Source: Piromyces finnis finn (taxonomy: Eukaryota > Fungi > Neocallimastigomycota). From it: DNA of 64,000 nt. Of the stretch, positions 45,618 to 54,967 are shown piece by piece; the first letter of the stretch is position 1, and every line of letters begins with the position of its first letter. The notes beneath the pieces were generated by a model, which searched no databases, had not been told where the DNA came from, and saw only the letters and a list, made by a program, of their open reading frames with translations. The position numbers and the translations under genes are program-made. The DNA lies in contig MCFH01000010.1 of NCBI GenBank assembly GCA_002104945.1, forward strand, positions 124,001-188,000, read 5' to 3'.

Positions 45618-48600
45618 TTATTCTTCCTTAGTTTCATTTTCCTTGGTTGGTTTGTATTTTTTAAAAATTTGTATTTTTCTATTTTGGTATTTCATTTTTT
45701 TTTTAAAAGCTAAAAATTCAGTCACCTCAGATACATTAGCGATAGCTTTTTCAGAATCAGGGATAGTAATAATATCTGGAATGGTCATGTTACTTATATC
45801 TCTTTTCAATGCTCTTTCTTTAATACTATCATTGGTTCTAACAAATGGTAAATAATAAGATAAAGTATAGATAATGGTGGCAATTCTACAAAAGTTAGTG
45901 GAAAGGATTTGATAAAATATTGGAAATACAACGCAAACTTCAAAAGGTAATTTAATTTTTGGGTTATTTCTTGCGATGATTAAATTAAAGATATCTAAGC
46001 TAATGAGTGAAATGGCAATGCAAATGCAAACAATCATTAGTGCTGGTAAATAAGAATGCATTAAAAACATAAATACTAATAGCACAAGAAAGGCGTAATC
46101 GTTTAAGATGGAAATAATAAAATCAAAACAAAATAATTTAGCTGTAAGAGTAGCTCGATGATTCCAACGACATTTATGGAGCAAACAATAAAGGAATTTA
46201 AAAAGAAAACGATGACGTGCTGGTTCCCAATAAGCAACACGTTGACGTGACAATGAATATTGACCACAATCGCAATCTTTCATATTTTCTCCTAGAAAAT
46301 GTGGAAGATATTCTTTTAAGTGGAAATAGCATCTTGGTACAAGAGTATCTATGATAACATGTGCTATTTCAATTTTATAATTACCATCATGTAATTCATT
46401 TGGATCACAAAATTGAGGTTTACCATACATGGTATGAAGACGAAGACCAAGTTGTAAATCATCTCCACGGAAAACTGTATCATGACGATAAAGACACTCC
46501 AATAGGAATGGGGTACTCCAAGTACTCATAGCCCCACTTGGGAATACTACTGTACCAATATCCTTATGTACCTTTTTACTGTACATTGAAATAATATATT
46601 CAAGATTTTGAAATGCTGAAACTATACCTTCACGACGATTACTTGCAATAATAGGATAGGCTAATGCTTTTACATTTTGATCCTTTTTAAAGTAGGATAA
46701 AATTTCTTCTTCAACCCAATTTTCCGGAATTAATACATCATCATCGATAATTGAAATGTACTTGATATCAATACCCGACCAAAACAAATTATTTATTAGA
46801 CAAAATTGAGCTAAAGTTTTAGAACCTTCATTTAAATTTGCATAAATAATATTTAATCCACAATAATTAGGATGTGTACATCTAAAGTGATGACTATAAC
46901 GGTCTACAATTTCCTTCATTTTTTGTTTTTCACTTGGAGAGGAACCATTTTCAGCTATGAAAATTGACATTGGCGTAGTAATTTTCAATAAATTTTCCAA
47001 AGTTGCTGGCAACACATCTGAACTATTATGACATACAATAAGAAAAGCATGATTAATACTTTTATACATGGATACAATTTTAGATTGTTTATTTTTATTT
47101 CCATGAACAATGTCAATTTCTATGACATTTCCTATTTCTTCATTTGGTATTCCGTCGTTACCCAAATTAATGTTGATGAATGAATTATTTGTGTCTGTGC
47201 TATTATGTTTGTTATAGTTAATACCCTTATCCCCATTCGAATCCCTATCATGAGTGGAATAGTTATTGGCACTATCTGAATTATTATTGAAAATGATTGT
47301 ATTATTGGATGCACTACTATTGTCATAAGTATCACTATATAGGGTAAAACCATCGTCTTCTTCATCATTAATAATGGTTGATGAACTATCCATTTCATTA
47401 TAAATAGCTAATGATTTCTTATTAAGAGAAGGCCATTTTACAAAAGGTGCGCCTAATAAAATCATAAAACTTTCTCTATTAAGTAAAAGCCAACATATAA
47501 TATTAAAGGTTATAAAGGGTATGCTGAAAGTTGCATAATTATTAATGATATAATTATATATTTTTCGACAGAGAACTTTGTAATAACTAAACTTTAGATT
47601 GGATCCAATTAAAAAATAGGATATTATAATCATGATCACAAGTTCAAATAAAGCAACCAACCAAAGCTTGAAAAAAGTAAAAGGAAAAAGTCTTGTTTTT
47701 TTATTGGAAAAAAAGTACCAAACAAAAGGATTAATGAAAACACCGTATAAAAGATGAATAAAGATGATTATGAATGATATTAAGAAAGCATTTGTAAAAA
47801 TAGAGTAGATACTGAATAAATTAATATTACGATTAGATTTAATAATTTCATCTCGCCTTTTTTTAATAAATATTTTCAAAGAGGCATAATCCTTTTCTAT
47901 ATTTGACATTTTATTTATTTGATTATTATTCTTATCAAGGATAGGTTCCAGTGAACCGTCCCATTTTAAATCTGCATGAACCATATTGAAAATACTATCC
48001 ATTCTATCTAAAAATAAGGTAGTTCCAAAAAAATTATTTACTATATAATTTATATAATCTCTAGTGTTATGTTTTTCACTTGAATAATTCATTAAATTAT
48101 CAAATATTGGTCTTCTCGTATCTTGTTTTCCTTTTCCTATAAAACGAAATTCCTCAAATTCTGTATAGATATAATTTTTACTCCAATCATTTAATGGTGA
48201 AGAAAAATATCCTTCATGATAATTCCATTGGTTTTTTGTCTATCGAGTTAAGAAAAAAAAATTTTAAATATTAATTGGTATGTTATCTTTTTTTTTTTTT
48301 TTAAATAATAACCATTTTATATCTATCTATCTATATATACTATATATAATATTTCATAAAAGATATAACTACTTACTTTATCATAATATAAAAAATAATT
48401 GGTTCCATTATATAAATAGCCATGCTGATTATTTAAAATGTAATCTATAGTCATTATTTTTAAAAATGAATCATAATTAAAGTTTTTTTTTAATTGGTCC
48501 AAGGAATTAAAATTTTCAGTCATATAGAATAATTTAGCAAGATCATTTTTGGAATGAAAAGTTTCAGGAGATTCAATTCCTTGATACCAATAATTTGCAT

Positions 48601-49896
48601 AACTATCTATATTTTCATTAATTAACAGTTTTGGGAATGTTTCAATTAAATCAAATTCACCATTGTATTTCATTGGAGAAAAGTGACTATTCATTTGGCC
48701 ATACATTTCAGTAGTGTTAAATTCATTTTTAAAATAATCAATATTTGGATTTTCTTTGATTAAATAAAAACCTATAGGGTTATTATTAAAATAAACTCTG
48801 GTAAATCCCACTTGAGCAGATGGTACATCCATAACATTACAGATATCGGTATTATGACGAAGCATAAGATTATCAGAAGAAGTAGATACTAATTGAATAC
48901 TAGTCTTATTAAACAGATTATAATATAATTTATCTGTGGGAGATGTTTGTGGTTGGGTTAAACTGTACTCTTTATAGGAGAGAAAATAAGAAGTTTTTTT
49001 AGGGTTATGATTCTTTTGAAAATAATATTTATTGGAATAGTAGGTAGTAAAATAAATATCGGTATTTATATTATCTGCCAATGCATTTATTTCCAATAAT
49101 AAATTTTCAAACTTTCCCACCGCATATGGAGTAATAATAGTAGCACTTACTTTTAATGATGGACTATTTTGTGAATTGGTGTAATGAGCATTTTCTAAAT
49201 CCTTATAGCCGGAAATGTCACCATTTAAATAAATTGTTGATATAAAATTATCAGAAAACAATTCTGAATACTTGTTTTGATTTCTGGTTATTTGGTTTCC
49301 TACTACCGTAGAAAGATCTGGATGATTATAAATTGAATCATTTCTATTGAAAAATTCATTTAACGGTTGGTTAGAATTCATATTCGATGGTTGAGCCAAT
49401 CTTTTAAAATTTTCTTCTTTTATGATTTTATTTTTATCAGTGATACTATAAGAAACATAACTATATGTTTCCTTTTTATCTAATTCATATTCTCCTCTCC
49501 AAATAGGATAATCTGTATCATCTAAATCTACTATTTTATTATTAATTTTCAGACCTACTTTTGTTGTATTTCTATTCACCGGGAACACTACACTAAATTG
49601 ATGAACCTCTAATTTTTTATATAACAAATATAACATTTATATAATATATATGTTATAATGTTATAAGTCAATAGGTAAAAATATATTATAAATGTATATT
49701 ATTATTATGATATTATGATATGATTATTAATAACAAAATTTAACAGCTAAAAAAATTATAATTATAATATAAATAAAAATTAAAATATATATATATATAT
49801 ATTCTTTAAATACTAACTTGAATAAACATTTGTGAAAAGAATTATTAATTCAAATAAATAAGTAACCCTATATATAAAATTCTTCTTTTTCAACAT
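45618..49896 (-). CDS. Signal peptide + CotH-like kinase domain + multi-TM processive GT2 glycosyltransferase fusion, about 1310 aa; exons 49896-49818, 49608-48377, 48239-45618
   Basis: Exon 1 is MLKKKNFIYRVTYLFELIILFTNVYS with donor gttagt (phase 1). Exon 2 is CotH-like (DVPSAQVGFTRVYFNNNPIGFYLIKEN; NYDSFLKIMTIDYILNNQHGYLYNGTNYFLYYDK) with donor gtaagt (phase 0). The acceptor at 48241-48240 gives TKNQWNY..., open and in frame with the 824-aa ORF (147 nt to ATG 48092). GT2 motifs: IIDDDV, FPSGAMSTW, RGDDLQLG and RQRVAYW, with flanking TM helices. Confidence 0.85.
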
Positions 49897-50649
49897 TTTT
49901 ATTTTACTAATAATAATGTATATAAAGACTATTAAGTAAGTATATCAAGTATATTATTATTTAGTGTTAATACTATAAAGTATTGCTATTTTTAAATAAA
50001 TAAAAAAAACAAAAACACTTGATAAACCTTTTTATTTTTCTTTATTTTTTATATAGGATTTCCAACCAATAAACCTTGAGAAATAAATAAATATATATTT
50101 ATTTTATTTAAATCATCCATTGAATAATTATTCCATATTTAAATGGGTATTTAAATATATAAAAAATATTAAAATTAAAAATAAATTAAATTTATGAATT
50201 TTTTTTTTTAATACCAAAAAAATTTTTTTTAATAGTAATACTAATGATATTATTTAATATTAAGCAAAAATAAAAGGTAATATTATTTTAATAAGAAATA
50301 TCATATTTTACTATTTTATATTCATCCTTTTAATATTACAATTTTATTTTACTTTTTTTTAAAAAAAGCCTTTTTTTTCCTTATTGAATAATCTTCTTTT
50401 TTTTGATAGCAAACTTTTGGGTTGGTTACCTGACCAATCAAACAAAAAAAAATTTTTAATATTCCTTCTTTTGTATTTTTATAACTCTTGGCATATTTTT
50501 TTTTCTTTTTGGATGCTTTTATTTCATTTATAAATATATTTTTATATTGACGCTCTTTAACATCGTTTTATACTTTTAATATTTTTTATTAGTAAAGCAA
50601 TTCAATTTCATATTTAAATATTTTTTTTTAAAAAAAATCTTATTTAAAG
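49897..50649. promoter_or_regulatory. Putative bidirectional promoter (753 bp) between the CotH-GT2 and LRR-GH genes
   Basis: Divergent ATGs at 49896 (minus) and 50650 (plus). CCAAT words occur at 50066-50070 and 50434-50438, the second inside a short inverted repeat. Function is inferred from geometry only. Confidence 0.45.
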
Positions 50650-51811
50650 ATGAATATAAAATTTTTAATAGCGGTTTTTCTTTTTCTATTCCTGTTGCCT
50701 TTTTCTGTGGATAGTTTAAATTCCTGTCGAAAACTGAAAAATCACTTGTGTCCTTCATGCGGTAAAGAAGACTATCAATGTGAAACCAATGAAAAGGGTG
50801 AGATAGATAGATTATATGTAATATGAAACAATACAATGCTTTAAACTATTTTTATCAAGTTTTATAGCTATATTATTAATATAATATAATTTGATAATTT
50901 GTATATATTCATAAAAATTAATGTATAATAAATATATATTATAGACATATTAATAATCAAGATTTTAGTGGTGGTATTCCAGATAAGATTTTCGAAATAA
51001 CTTCTATAACATCATTGTAAATAATACTTTTTTTTTCTATTTGAAAAACTTATTAAAATAACCTGTACTAACTTTTTATTATTTATAAAAATCAAATGTG
51101 TCTATGTCTTTAAAAATAATAAATTTATATATATATATATTTATAGATATTTACTAAATGACAAAATTTTTACACTTTCGAATCAAATTAGTAATCTAAA
51201 AAATCTTTTAAGACTGTAAAATTTATACCTTTTAATATAAAATATATCACTTAAAACACTTTTTTTTTTATGAAAAAATTTAATTTAATAATAATACTAA
51301 AAATTATAATATTTTAAATTCACCTTAACTATTTTATTTTATATGATTAATACAGAGATGTTAGAAAAAATAATTTGAAAACTATTCCTTCAACTATTAG
51401 AGATCTTAGTAAACTTAAATACTTGTAATTTTTTAAAAATTTTAAAAAGAATTCATATAAATAAGCTTTTATATTTTTTTTAAATAAAAAAGGCCAAAAA
51501 AATTAATTTATATATTTTTACTAACTTCTTATTTCCATTTATCTATAGAAAACTAAGTAATAATCCTATAACAGAACTTCCAGAAGAAATTGGAAATTTA
51601 AAGGAACTTAGATCATTGTAAATAAAAAATATAAAAGGATTAAAAAGAAAACTTTTTTTTGATATTAATTTAAATTCCTCCCTTTTTTTTTAATTGATTT
51701 TTTATTTCTATACTAAGATATTTAACAAATTGTAAATTGAAAAAACTGCCATCGTCCATTACTCAACTTTCTAATCTACAAGATTTGTGAGTACTTCTAA
51801 AAATTAAAAGA

Positions 51812-51862
<51 letters not shown>

Positions 51863-54528
51863 AATAATTGTATTTTTTATATAAATTTTTATTTTAATTT
51901 AATAATAGAAAACTTGAAAATAATGAATTATCAGCTATTTCAGAAGAAATTAAAAATATTAGAAATAAAAAACAATTGTAAGAGTTATTAAAATATATTT
52001 AAATATGGTTATAAAAGTTAAAATAATAAATAATTCTTTATTTAACTTTTTTTTTCATAAAGAGTTTTAGATAACAAATCGATTGTTGAATCCTCAATTA
52101 CACATAATGAAACTGATTTTATGTAAGTTAATTTAAAATAAAATTATTAAAATGGTTTTAATTAAAAAAAAATATTGATATCACTATGAAAGTTAACTAA
52201 TATAGAATGAATCAATTTATTTATTAATAATATTAAAAAAATTTTAACAGGTCCTATAAAATAACTAGTTTGGTTAGAAAAAAAAATTTATCATTTTATA
52301 AGGATGAAGGCGTCTCTTATATTGCCAAAACTAATGGTAGATATCTTTCAGTATATGACGGCTCTACTTTCAAAGATATTTATATTCAAGGTGTAAATAT
52401 TGGATTAGGTTTACCAAATTATTTTCCCGAAGAAACTGGAATTGCTTATGATCAATATTATGATTGGTTTAATAAAATTGCGGAAATGAATGCTAATTCC
52501 ATTAGAGTTTATACCATACAATCACCTGAGTTCTATAAAGCCTTTTATAATTATAATAAAAACAATAAGCATAAACCAATCTATTTATTTCAGGGTACAT
52601 GGTATAATGAAGATCGTTGGTTAGAAACTCAAAATGCATTTGATTTAGAGCTACTTTCTAATCTTTATCAAGACACAAGAGACTTAATAGATATAATCCA
52701 TGGAAATTCAATTTTACCGAAATTGCCAGGAAGAGCATCAGGTATATATTCATTTGATATATCTCCTTGGTGTATTGGTTGGATTTTAGGTGTTGAATCG
52801 AGTAAACAATTTGTAAATACGACAAATATTTGTAATCCAGATAAAACTCATTATAAAGGGGAATACATTTCAGCCAATAATATACAGCCTTTTGAAGTTT
52901 TCTGGGCCATGACTGCTGATTATACAGTTTCCTACGAAATGACGAATTATAAAACTCAAAGACCTATTAGTTTCTCCAATTGGCTTACAGCCGATGTCAT
53001 GCGACATCCTAGTGAAACAATGGAAGATGAAGATACCGTTACACTAGATATTCAACGACTTACCCAAGAAGATGCCTTTAAATGTGGATTTTTCGCTTCT
53101 TATCATGTTTATCCGTATTATCCAAATTTTATGTGGACACAAAAAAATTATATTGAACATAAAAATGATGATGGCAAAATAGACCCGTACGAAGCGTATT
53201 TACAAGATTTGAAATCAGTTCATTTCGATAACATTCCCCTTCTTGTAGCAGAATTTGGAATACCATCTTCTCGTGGAATAACCCATCAAAATCCTATTAC
53301 CGGTTATAATCAAGGAAAAGTTGATGAAAAAACACAAGGACATATGCTTGTTGAAATGGCAAAAAGTATTAAAGCTAATAATTACACTGGTTGTTTAATT
53401 TTTTCATGGCAAGATGAATGGTTTAAGCGTACTTGGAATACTATGGATAATACAAATGAAACCAGAAGAGCGTATTGGGATGATGTTCAAACAAATGAAC
53501 AAAACTTTGGTATACTTGATTTTGTTTCCTATACCGATGACCATAAGATTATGATACTCGATGGCAAAACAGATGACTGGACCTCCAATGATAAATTTAC
53601 TGAAACAAGGAATATCAAGATGTCAGTTAAAAAGGATGCCGCCTATATTTATATTTTACTTGAAGCAAATACTATGGTTGATTTAACAAAGGATAGAGTA
53701 TTGATATCTTTTGATGTTACTCCGAAGTCCGGTTCTCACATCTATACCTCCCATGATGGTAAAGATATTTTTAATTTTTCCGAAGCTGTTGATTTTGTGC
53801 TTGAATTAAACGGACGAAATGATACAGAAATATTTACCCATGAATATTATGACAAGTTTGTCTATTCCTATTATCAGTATGAAGAAGTGAAAATCAAAGG
53901 ATTAAAGCCTGCCACTTCACGTAAAAGTTCAGTGTTTAATTCGATTAAACTTTTAAATGAAATAGAACTTCTTCTTCCTGATAGAAATGAAACGATCAAT
54001 ACACTCTATGATATTACTGGTAAGCTTTTATTTGGAAGTACGGATAAAGCATCTCCAGATTATTCAACAATATCGGATTTCTATTTAACCCCATCTATTG
54101 CTGAAATAAGAATTGCGTATGGTTTACTTAATTTTAGAGATCCATCATCTTTAGCAATTGAAGATGATTTCTATGCTCTTGATAAGAATGTTGATTTAGA
54201 AATAGATTCAATTAAAATAGGACTTACTGAAGGCAATAACACCATATTCAAAACCTTCTCATGGGATAAATGGGATACTGTTGCTTATCAAGAAAGGTTA
54301 AAAGATTCCTATTCTATTTTACAAGGTTATTTTGCAGAAGAAGAAAATTCCAATCATTCCTATAAGAAAATTATAATACTATCTATACTAATGATTATTA
54401 TACTATTGTTACTATTCTTACTATTTTTTTTTTCAAAAGAAAAAATATTATTAAAAAAAATATACAACCTTAAAGCAAAGCAAGACAAAAAAACAAAAAA
54501 ACAAAAAAATAGTCCAAATTTATTATGA
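50650..54528 (+). CDS. Signal peptide + Cys cap + LRR array + clan GH-A (TIM-barrel) glycoside hydrolase + C-terminal TM anchor; exons 50650-about 50800, about 50945/50962-51016, 51147-51215, 51356-51424, 51549-51617, 51718-51786, 51909-51977, 52063-52122, 52251-54528
   Basis: Exon 1 is MNIKFLIAVFLFLFLLPFSVDSLNSCRKLKNHLCPSCGKEDYQCETNEKG. Five 69-nt phase-2 LRR exons follow (e.g. KLSNNPITELPEEIGNLKELRSL) and splice in frame into the 752-aa ORF. GH motifs: IQGVNIG, MNANSIRVYT, WILGVE (acid/base), ASYHVYPYYP, LLVAEFG (nucleophile) and FSWQDEWFKRTWN. TM: IIILSILMIIILLLLFLLFFF. The exon 1/2 junction is ambiguous. Confidence 0.85.
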
Positions 54529-54967
54529 TATTAAATAATTTCAATATTTATTATTATTATTATTTTTAATTATCATAGAATATACTATATTATTATTATC
54601 TATAATTATTTATTATCCATTATTTATTATTTCTTATTATTTTCATTATCCTAGACTCTCAAACAGTATACTGGAAGTAAAATAAATACAATAAAATTAA
54701 TTATAAATTTGATTTTTTATATTTTATAAATAATACTAAAAAAATTATCTTTTTTTTTTTTTTTTTTTTTTTGTTTTGGTTTATTTTTATTAAATCTATT
54801 TTAAACTAATAATTATAATGCTAATAATAATAATAGCATTTACTGTAATGTCATATATATTTATTATATATATATTATATATTATACTATTTATTAATAC
54901 TATAAAGTATTATGTAACTACACTATAAAAAAAAAATTTAATTATTAGATTTTCCTTTTTTTTTTTA

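Follow-up and report, generated by a model that had tools for sequence, protein, structure and literature searches.

An LRR-capped, membrane-anchored protein of Piromyces finnis with a clan GH-A-like barrel derived from Lachnospiraceae

The forward strand of a 64,000-nt stretch of Piromyces finnis DNA (contig MCFH01000010.1, positions 124,001 to 188,000; hereafter the window) carries, at 50650-54528, short LRR-coding exons followed by a long ORF with the look of a bacterial glycoside hydrolase. The locus raises the question of whether these parts make up one protein, where the hydrolase-like part came from, and what such a protein would do. Our analysis makes it probable that the gene encodes an expressed type I membrane glycoprotein, in which a native LRR cassette precedes a GH-A-type unit acquired from Lachnospiraceae and a transmembrane (TM) helix and tail of fungal making.

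The LRR-hydrolase gene is transcribed. Logan cDNA contigs of three runs (X1, X2 and X3) from three studies lack the introns and join eight small exons, encoding a signal peptide, a Cys cap and seven LRRs, to a 2.28-kb exon at 52122/52251, confirming that splicing joins the LRR exons to the hydrolase exon and that the intron is exactly the one proposed in the original prediction, 52123-52250. The other joints in the contigs are 50813/50945, 51215/51356, 51424/51549, 51617/51718, 51786/51909 and 51977/52063, while joint 51016/51147 is deduced from record offsets because the repeat is masked there. All eight introns are in phase 2, and by arithmetic the deduced protein is 972 aa long.

Exon 1 (50650-50813) comprises the start codon, the signal peptide (hydrophobic core at residues 4-18) and a Cys-rich LRR N-cap with four Cys; its last 2 nt belong to a split Leu codon. 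It is covered by X1 and X3 contigs (50646/50658 to 50813, joined to 50945), and its product is 47% identical to residues 1-51 of Anaeromyces robustus P0004. The exon stops at 50813 and does not run on to the stop codon that closes the raw ORF in frame. Intron 1 (50814-50944) is a non-canonical AT..AG intron with donor ATATGT, removed at 50813/50945 in X1 and X3; in X2, a cryptic GT donor at 50818 gives the joint 50817/50945, and its use would shift the frame. The A. robustus orthologues have a canonical TT/GTATGT at this position. The AT..AG intron and the frameshifting alternative donor make it questionable how much full-length protein is produced.

Exon 2 (50945-51016, 72 nt; X1, X2 and X3; 65% identical to P0004 residues 54-76) encodes the first LRR unit, and five 69-nt exons encode one unit each: exon 3 (51147-51215; covered by X2 over 51156-51215; P0004 78-97), exon 4 (51356-51424; GT..AG joints in X1, X2 and X3; P0004 101-122), exon 5 (51549-51617; joints in X1, X2 and X3; 95% identical to P0004 124-143), exon 6 (51718-51786; joints in X1 and X3; P0004 148-168) and exon 7 (51909-51977; joints in X1, X2 and X3; P0004 171-191). 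The start of exon 3, within the masked repeat, is placed by record offsets and an AG acceptor. Exon 8 (52063-52122, 60 nt; spliced at its 5′ end in X1 and X2 and at its 3′ end in all three runs) encodes a degenerate last repeat or C-cap and ends with the AT of a split ATG. Exon 9 (52251-54528) contains the ORF at 52270-54528 and encodes the two-domain unit of bacterial derivation together with the fungal TM helix and tail, with the stop codon at 54526-54528; cDNA reaches 54262 in X1, 54386 in X3 and 54470 in X2. The public P. finnis gene model, which omits the signal peptide and LRRs, is faulty and needs correction. The exons were analysed one at a time, with the A. robustus protein P0004 as a proxy for the N-terminal part.

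The products of exons 2-7 are tandem LxxLxLxxNxL units, one 23-residue unit per exon. Exon-by-exon mapping shows them to be collinear with residues 54-191 of A. robustus P0004, at 50-95% identity; the precomputed Pfam matches of P0004 are LRR_8, LRR_14, LRR_4 and LRR_1. A word search with the LRR region was swamped by generic LRR proteins, and only matches spanning the full cassette were kept. The same kind of cassette, a Cys cap with LRRs, also occurs on CotH and GH1 proteins, making it a recurrent cap. From the uniform intron phase, the five 69-nt one-LRR exons and the presence of the cassette on CotH and GH1 proteins, we infer exon shuffling, as had been suggested from the gene's layout.

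The first domain of the large exon (52297-53451; model residues ~16-400) is confidently predicted to be a clan GH-A (β/α)8 barrel. The AF2 model (pLDDT 86.5, pTM 0.88) contains the eight β/α units of a TIM barrel, and the top Foldseek and VIA-align matches belong to clan GH-A only, bearing out the predicted fold. VIA-align gives Z 24.5 for GH157, 23.5 for GH5 and 23.3 for GH2, and values of 24.5-17 for about 50 GH-A entries. The nearest solved structures are LaGH157 of GH157 (9fz9/9g5g), a GH5 mannanase (1rh9) and a GH2 enzyme (6ncw). Further matches in the clan include GH72 Gel4/Gas2p, GH17 (6fcg) and GH39 PslG (4zn2). For these structures, Z ranges from 18 to 24.5 across some 275-300 residues, with no family above the rest. 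Because the nearest structures are only 11-17% identical to the barrel and scattered over many families, the substrate cannot be read off from them. Residues 1-690 of the large exon match no Pfam or NCBIfam model, neither phmmer nor a 106-sequence profile matches the exon to the PDB, and precomputed Pfam annotation gives no domain for any of the bacterial homologues.

The barrel retains the pair of Glu expected of a clan GH-A enzyme. The two motifs singled out in the original prediction, ILGVE and VAEFG, are present, and the Glu of each is invariant among 106 homologous sequences. Specifically, Glu182 (codon 52795-52797), the candidate acid/base, is positioned three residues past β4 (174-179), and Glu334 (codon 53251-53253), the candidate nucleophile, sits in the last part of β7 (330-335), as judged from the secondary structure of the model. 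Together with R85, H285, Y287 and W386, likewise invariant in the 106 sequences, they reproduce the set of conserved positions that is classical for GH-A/GH5: Glu after β4, Glu on β7, Arg on β2, His-x-Tyr on β6 and Trp on β8. The rim residues, including D388 in addition to these four, and both Glu are invariant in the seven fungal and 99 bacterial sequences. In clan GH-A, the acid/base Glu is commonly, not universally, preceded by Asn (the ‘NE’ motif). This Asn is absent from the present family, which has G-[IV]-E throughout its bacterial and fungal members, with Val/Ile in its place; the missing Asn is a trait of the whole bacterial family and not a fungal loss. The segment WQDEWFKRTWN...NEQ-FG past β8 is highly conserved in the P. 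finnis family, with no GH-A counterpart identified. The predicted activity is that of a retaining β-glycanase or transglycosylase.

The second domain (53515-54300) is modelled as a β-sandwich (AF2 pLDDT 91.9) resembling CBM9, CBM74 and DOMON domains. VIA-align gives Z 10.3 for Sas6 CBM74, followed by 8.8, 8.6 (4jpq), 7.7 and 7.2 (CBM9, 20% identity), against a background of about 4.5-5, and Foldseek matches CBM74 with an E value of 2.5e-5. There is no Pfam CBM9 match, and we regard the domain as a CBM9/CBM74-like, putative carbohydrate-binding module. It is followed by the TM helix and basic tail that had been predicted: a 21-residue hydrophobic helix (54370-54432) that includes the highest 19-residue hydropathy window (mean 3.6), and a Lys-rich, predicted cytoplasmic tail of 30 aa (54436-54525) with 11 K/R and 2 D/E and no signalling domain that can be recognised. 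The helix is present in all seven fungal copies and in no bacterial homologue. Its apparent absence from A. robustus is rejected as a model artefact, since the genomic ORFs continue into the TM helix; the public A. robustus models are clipped, lack the TM anchor and need correction.

The relatives named in the original prediction, proteins of Clostridia and Bacilli labelled ‘family 2 glycosyl transferase’, are real (41-56% identity); in all, the mislabelled bacterial homologues come from at least 582 GTDB species, and the family has structural relatives, all of them bacterial, in Bacteroidota, Gemmatimonadota and Acidobacteriota. Phylogenetic analysis shows a bacterial origin of the two-domain unit, in agreement with the predicted horizontal transfer. 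All seven copies from gut fungi group in a single clade within rumen/gut Lachnospiraceae (100/100), nested by three starred nodes, none of 200 bootstrap trees contains a bacteria-only clade, and an AU test supports the nesting (p 0.0007). Exon 9 lies on a 1.2-Mb fungal contig and is flanked by fungal genes. Phylogeny, spliced cDNA, contig and GC3 together reveal a nested recipient clade and integration into the genome, as in an interkingdom xenolog (bacteria to Neocallimastigaceae). By contrast, two features noted earlier carry no weight as signs of transfer. Exon 9 is indeed GC-richer (0.30) than the LRR exons (0.25) and introns (0.07-0.15), but this gain reflects coding versus non-coding DNA, and its GC3 (0.207) equals that of the adjoining fungal genes (0.208 and 0.183), so we reject a foreign signature. 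Likewise, it is one intronless exon of 2278 nt, but intronlessness is not diagnostic because the adjoining genes also have long intron-free ORFs.

The transfer itself was already known. In Ciach et al. 2024 (PMC11291939), the barrel family is listed independently as Cluster_374, classed ‘hgt’, with recipient taxid 29007 and donor taxid 186802; the text of that paper treats neither the Cluster_374 family nor its fold, nor the fusion to LRRs. New here are the assignment of the fold, the exopolysaccharide setting in bacteria, the narrower donor, the recurrent LRR cassette, the TM anchor shared by every fungal copy, and the faults of the public models. The case resembles other CAZyme transfers into Neocallimastigomycota, such as those fused to CBM10 dockerins, in having a Eubacteriales donor, a fusion to a fungal module after transfer, and expression. 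Unlike the dockerin fusions, the P. finnis protein carries a Cys-capped LRR array and a TM anchor and no dockerin, and its product would therefore be tethered to the cell surface and not cellulosomal.

The bacterial loci indicate the setting from which the unit came. A processive GT2 synthase lies within 6 kb in 64 of 82 bacterial loci, mostly on the same strand, in line with the GT2 adjacency given in the original prediction, and a HEAT-repeat protein is adjacent in 50 of the 82. The loci are of HEAT–GT2 type or are XrtG-type clusters, and the partner GT2s either resemble PgaC/IcaA without reaching the family cut-off or are XrtG-associated (TIGR03111, XrtG-associated glycosyltransferase; the match scores 618 bits, where the cut-off is 364). 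Among the Lachnospiraceae loci that are closest, several have no GT2 within the 6-kb flank. In bacteria, the homologue belongs to GT2-synthase exopolysaccharide loci as an extracytoplasmic component with a signal or lipobox anchor, showing the linkage to a GT2 synthase that marks components of synthase-dependent systems. Such systems have dedicated hydrolases, among them PslG (GH39), BcsZ (GH8), PgaB (GH153) and PelA. They likewise place an extracytoplasmic glycanase-like protein beside a processive GT2 and accessory repeat proteins, although the P. finnis-type family is a different, unassigned one. By analogy, the bacterial enzyme is most likely its system's own glycan trimmer, as PslG and BcsZ are in theirs. 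Literature searches on the accessions, on XrtG/TIGR03111 and on P. finnis with LRR yielded nothing on the barrel family.

Taken with the fungal gene structure, these observations suggest how the protein may have arisen. The ancestor of the sampled Neocallimastigaceae probably acquired the two-domain unit once, from rumen/gut Lachnospiraceae; a native gut-fungal cassette of signal peptide, Cys cap and seven LRRs, encoded largely in 69-nt phase-2 exons, is spliced to it, and the fungus would afterwards have added the TM helix and basic tail. Anchored on the outer side of the plasma membrane, the barrel would then work as a retaining β-glycanase or transglycosylase on a β-linked polymer, which may be a glycan of the fungal wall or matrix or an exopolysaccharide of bacteria, while the LRR cap would provide contact with a protein or ligand.

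The best-surviving alternative is a sub-case of this explanation and not exclusive of it, namely that the barrel is a GH72/GH17-like wall-remodelling transglycosylase whose substrate is a polymer of the fungus itself, perhaps one made by the adjacent CotH-GT2 synthase, the two genes forming a synthase-plus-trimmer pair analogous to the bacterial exopolysaccharide systems. Fungal wall remodellers share the membrane tether, and Z is about 20 for GH72 Gel4 and Gas2p and 19.3 for GH17, but these families score no better than GH157, GH5 and GH2. In the window, a GT2 gene stands head-to-head with the LRR-hydrolase gene; the window ORF 48323-49636 has no CotH Pfam match at E ≤ 0.01, and homologues of the fused CotH-GT2 gene carry PF08757. 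In A. robustus, the orthologue of the window GT2 is found 9.3 kb upstream of P0004, in a different orientation, and the second paralogue has no GT2 out to 10 kb; only one of the two paralogues retains the linkage. The window GT2 belongs to a gut-fungal family with distant relatives in Basidiobolus and chytrids and is unrelated to the bacterial partners: at E ≤ 1e-5 it matches nothing in the 82 bacterial loci, it is about 22% identical to the partner GT2s, and we reject its co-transfer with the hydrolase unit. We consider this narrower reading unlikely.

Less probable still is that the protein lacks catalysis and serves as a surface receptor or lectin, in which the barrel of a pseudo-enzyme and the sandwich would bind a glycan such as bacterial exopolysaccharide, and the LRRs, TM helix and tail would report or tether. 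The architecture (signal peptide, LRRs, TM helix, short tail) and the missing Asn fit such a protein, and the term ‘receptor-like’, used in the original prediction, holds as a description of architecture and not as a claim of signalling. The architecture alone recalls plant-type LRR RLPs, which have a signal peptide, Cys-capped extracellular LRRs, one TM helix and a short basic tail; unlike them, the P. finnis protein has only seven LRRs and bears an enzyme-like barrel and a CBM-like domain between LRRs and membrane, and homology is neither shown nor implied. Against a pseudo-enzyme stand the invariance of both Glu and of the rim residues in fungi and bacteria alike, the family-wide nature of the missing Asn, and a tail without a recognisable signalling domain.

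Contamination, misassembly or vertical inheritance as the source of the bacterial likeness has nothing in its favour and is next to impossible, given the splicing of exon 9 to intron-bearing fungal exons in three studies, its contig, neighbours and GC3, the orthologues in A. robustus genomic DNA, and the nesting of the fungal copies within Lachnospiraceae. That the protein is a family 2 glycosyltransferase has only the database name in its favour and is just as implausible, as it matches no GT2 Pfam or NCBIfam model, forms a (β/α)8 barrel and not a GT-A fold, and adjoins the true GT2, a separate gene, in bacterial loci.

More speculatively, and in our estimation with a small chance, a Lachnospiraceae exopolysaccharide trimmer may have become an LRR-capped surface ‘receptor-glycanase’ that recognises and cuts the matrix polymer of its donor bacteria, for anti-biofilm defence, neighbour sensing or scavenging, or part of a CotH-GT2-linked synthase-plus-trimmer module that builds a hitherto undescribed polymer of the fungal surface; either way, the barrel would found a new clan GH-A family represented in at least 582 bacterial species. 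A large, wrongly named bacterial family without a Pfam model can now be read as clan GH-A-type and linked to GT2 exopolysaccharide systems, a concrete candidate both for a new CAZy family and for work on biofilm matrices. In gut fungi, acquired enzymes are not only joined to dockerins and routed to cellulosomes but also made into membrane-anchored, LRR-capped surface proteins.

The polypeptide encoded by exon 9 (52251–54528, forward strand) has no match in Pfam, NCBIfam or PDB sequences, even with a 106-sequence profile. AlphaFold2, supplied with the 106-sequence alignment, predicts a confident (β/α)8 barrel (pLDDT 86.5, pTM 0.88), whose top Foldseek matches all belong to clan GH-A (GH157, GH2 and GH5; E ~1e-9 to 1e-10, 11–14% identity). 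A second, independent structure search, with VIA-align against 48,161 chains, places GH157 (Z 24.5), a GH5 mannanase (23.5) and GH2 (23.3) ahead of GH72 Gel4 and Gas2p (~20), GH17 (19.3) and the GH39 member PslG (18.0), with no single GH family outstanding among these scores. At the level of predicted structure, both searches agree with the clan GH-A assignment originally proposed from sequence alone. Invariant residues are positioned where the clan expects them, namely R85 (β2), E182 (just after β4), H285-x-Y287 (β6), E334 (β7) and W386 (β8). E182 and E334, the two glutamates that the original prediction had found intact (ILGVE and VAEFG), are candidate catalytic residues by their position in the predicted model; no member of the barrel's sequence family has the Asn commonly found just before the acid/base Glu. 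The C-terminal half of the unit is modelled as a β-sandwich (pLDDT 91.9), and its structural matches exceed background only for CBM74 of Sas6, for CBM9 and for modules of DOMON type (Z 10.3–7.2, Foldseek E 2.5e-5). Downstream of the sandwich, the protein ends in a TM helix of 21 residues and a tail of 30 aa that includes 11 K/R, the two features noted in the original prediction.

A word search retrieved six further gut-fungal proteins (68–75% identity), followed by Clostridia proteins of 700–770 aa with 41–51% identity over 90% of the query. The latter bear the database name 'family 2 glycosyl transferase', the label that the original prediction gave as a frequent misnomer of similar Firmicutes proteins. 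Relatives are encoded in at least 582 GTDB species genomes, the best matches being Lachnospiraceae MAGs (50–56% identity), several of which originate from the rumens of goat, sheep and water deer. ESM-Atlas look-alikes, selected by features and structure, are exclusively bacterial and include Bacteroidota with T9SS tails and Gemmatimonadota/Acidobacteriota with TPR fusions (TM ~0.9); in all of them the barrel region is free of Pfam assignments.

Two trees were computed, a quick one of 105 rows and a careful one of 53 rows (LG+C20+F+G4), the latter without the rows on long end branches (Treponema, Methylococcus, C. celatum, Izimaplasma and L075). The seven fungal sequences form one clade in both trees (100/100), with a stem of 0.83 in the quick and 0.94 in the careful tree. 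In the careful tree, three supported nodes (100/100, 100/97 and 96/88) place this clade deep within a larger one that consists mainly of Lachnospiraceae, with a single row labelled Oscillospiraceae, while Bacillaceae, Clostridiaceae and Paenibacillaceae occupy the opposite side, consistent with the nesting within Clostridia or Bacilli predicted for a horizontal transfer. The bacterial part forms a clade without the fungal sequences in 0 of 200 bootstrap trees, and forcing it to do so costs 36.2 lnL units (p-AU 0.0007, indicative only, since the choice of group followed inspection of the tree). In the supplement of Ciach et al. 2024, Cluster_374, whose members include the Anaeromyces robustus proteins ORX78336.1 (P0004) and ORX83716.1 (P0006), is entered as 'hgt' from donor taxid 186802 (Eubacteriales) to recipient taxid 29007 (Neocallimastigaceae); the text of that paper mentions neither LRRs nor the protein family of Cluster_374. 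The transfer is already catalogued and not new; new here are the fold, the bacterial context, the refinement of the donor, the full architecture and the corrections of gene models.

AT content is extreme throughout the window, where GC is 0.21 overall, 0.07–0.15 in introns and spacers and 0.25–0.31 in coding DNA, and 52270–54528 (forward strand) was confirmed as a genuine ORF preceded by small exons with GT..AG borders. Contigs from three public runs of three studies, with the run kind given as 'RNA?', account for ~55% of the sampled words of 50500–54600; the runs are identified as cDNA because the assembled contigs show intron-less GT..AG joints, and they report joints, not levels, ends or isoform ratios. 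On the forward strand, the joints are 50813/50945, 51215/51356, 51424/51549, 51617/51718, 51786/51909, 51977/52063 and 52122/52251, the last an exact match to the predicted intron 52123–52250. One contig, 2,916 nt long, spans the 5′ UTR to 54262, and a second extends to 54470. The exons measure 164 (from the ATG at 50650), 72, five times 69, 60 and 2278 nt, summing to 2919 nt, or 972 codons plus stop, and all introns are in phase 2, each interrupting the codon for a repeat's first Leu. Exons 1–7, translated singly, are collinear with residues 1–191 of P0004 (47–95% identity), for which LRR Pfam families are precomputed. A perfect (ATT)n microsatellite of ~16 units lies within intron 6 (51815–51862).

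The intron 1 donor (50811–50822) reads ATATGT, compared with GTATGT in both A. robustus orthologues. Two cDNA assemblies splice at the old site, AT..AG and in frame, and a third splices out of frame, at a cryptic GT located 4 nt further downstream; a genuine non-canonical intron, polymorphism between strains or faulty assembly could each account for the oddity. The protein on record for the contig (P0001, 759 aa; 52121–54528) starts at a Met codon split by the last intron (AT|G), there being no Met in exons 2–8. Neither the signal peptide nor any LRR thus appears to be included in this public P. finnis model, a probable consequence of the inability of gene callers to splice an AT..AG intron. 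At the two A. robustus paralogue loci, genomic ORFs (L083:11829–14120 and L084:11798–14050) continue in frame into the TM helix and basic tail, in place of which the published models ORX78336.1 and ORX83716.1 carry other C-termini; the L083 model extends 1.7 kb further.

Counting these genomic ORFs, a TM helix and basic tail form the C-terminus of each of the seven fungal copies; bacterial homologues have an N-terminal signal peptide or lipobox and no C-terminal TM helix. The N-terminal cassette, spanning the Cys-cap motif, the LRRs and a '...LDNN-I--LP...VS' end, recurs at full length (45–50% identity) on an LRR-CotH protein of A. robustus and, twice, on an LRR-GH1 protein. In gut fungi, extracellular domains of several different kinds carry this cap. 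An A. robustus LRR and CotH gene (L084:22365–23976) lies 8 kb downstream of the paralogue encoding P0006. Recurrence of the cassette on other domains, together with the uniform phase-2, one-repeat exons, supports, and does not prove, the proposed assembly of the gene by exon duplication and shuffling.

The divergent, head-to-head neighbour (45618–49636, reverse strand) comprises an 824-aa ORF with a multi-TM GT2 synthase domain (45618–48092; Pfam Glyco_tranf_2_3, 5e-12) and, ahead of it, an ORF of 437 aa with no Pfam match; its public model has 1310 aa. Homologues in Neocallimastix and metagenomes join GT2 with CotH, and only gut fungi have the family, apart from distant, 30%-identical relatives in Basidiobolus and the chytrid Podochytrium. 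The neighbour is unrelated to the GT2s that accompany the bacterial homologues. In A. robustus, a GT2 orthologue occurs 9.3 kb upstream of one hydrolase paralogue and in the same orientation, but there is none close to the second paralogue, so that linkage of hydrolase and GT2 is suggestive and no more.

In bacteria, a GT2 gene lies within 6 kb of the homologue at 64 of 82 loci, in keeping with the neighbourhood given in the original prediction, and a HEAT protein is present at 50 of 82. In Clostridium manihotivorum, the gene for the homologue is followed by those for a HEAT-repeat protein and a GT2 synthase; in Bacillaceae, HEAT, GT2 and homologue are contiguous in that order. The HEAT-type GT2 is closest to PgaC/IcaA, yet far under the cut-off of that family. 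The closest, Lachnospiraceae-type loci read homologue, PTPS-related membrane protein, exosortase, GT2, the last matching NCBIfam TIGR03111 (XrtG-associated; 618 bits, cut-off 364). At Bacillaceae loci (L012, L029, L031, L032, L064 and others), the stop-to-stop ORF of the homologue spans ~1,090 aa and begins within or beside the GT2 gene end, and therefore includes an N-terminal extension of ~350 aa; the Priestia copy has a weak, sub-threshold Firmicu-CTERM match. Single long-branch copies outside Bacillota, in a Treponema MAG (L040) and a Methylococcus MAG (L046), each with a HEAT-GT2 or GT2 neighbour, may be further bacterial transfers or binning errors.

PslG, BcsZ and PgaB are glycan-processing enzymes of synthase systems, and by analogy the bacterial family most likely serves as a glycan-processing enzyme of GT2 synthase systems. 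The original observation of an LRR-capped hydrolase is confirmed and its interpretation as a bacterial acquisition supported; as to function, we infer that the fungal protein is a membrane-tethered, retaining β-glycanase or transglycosylase.
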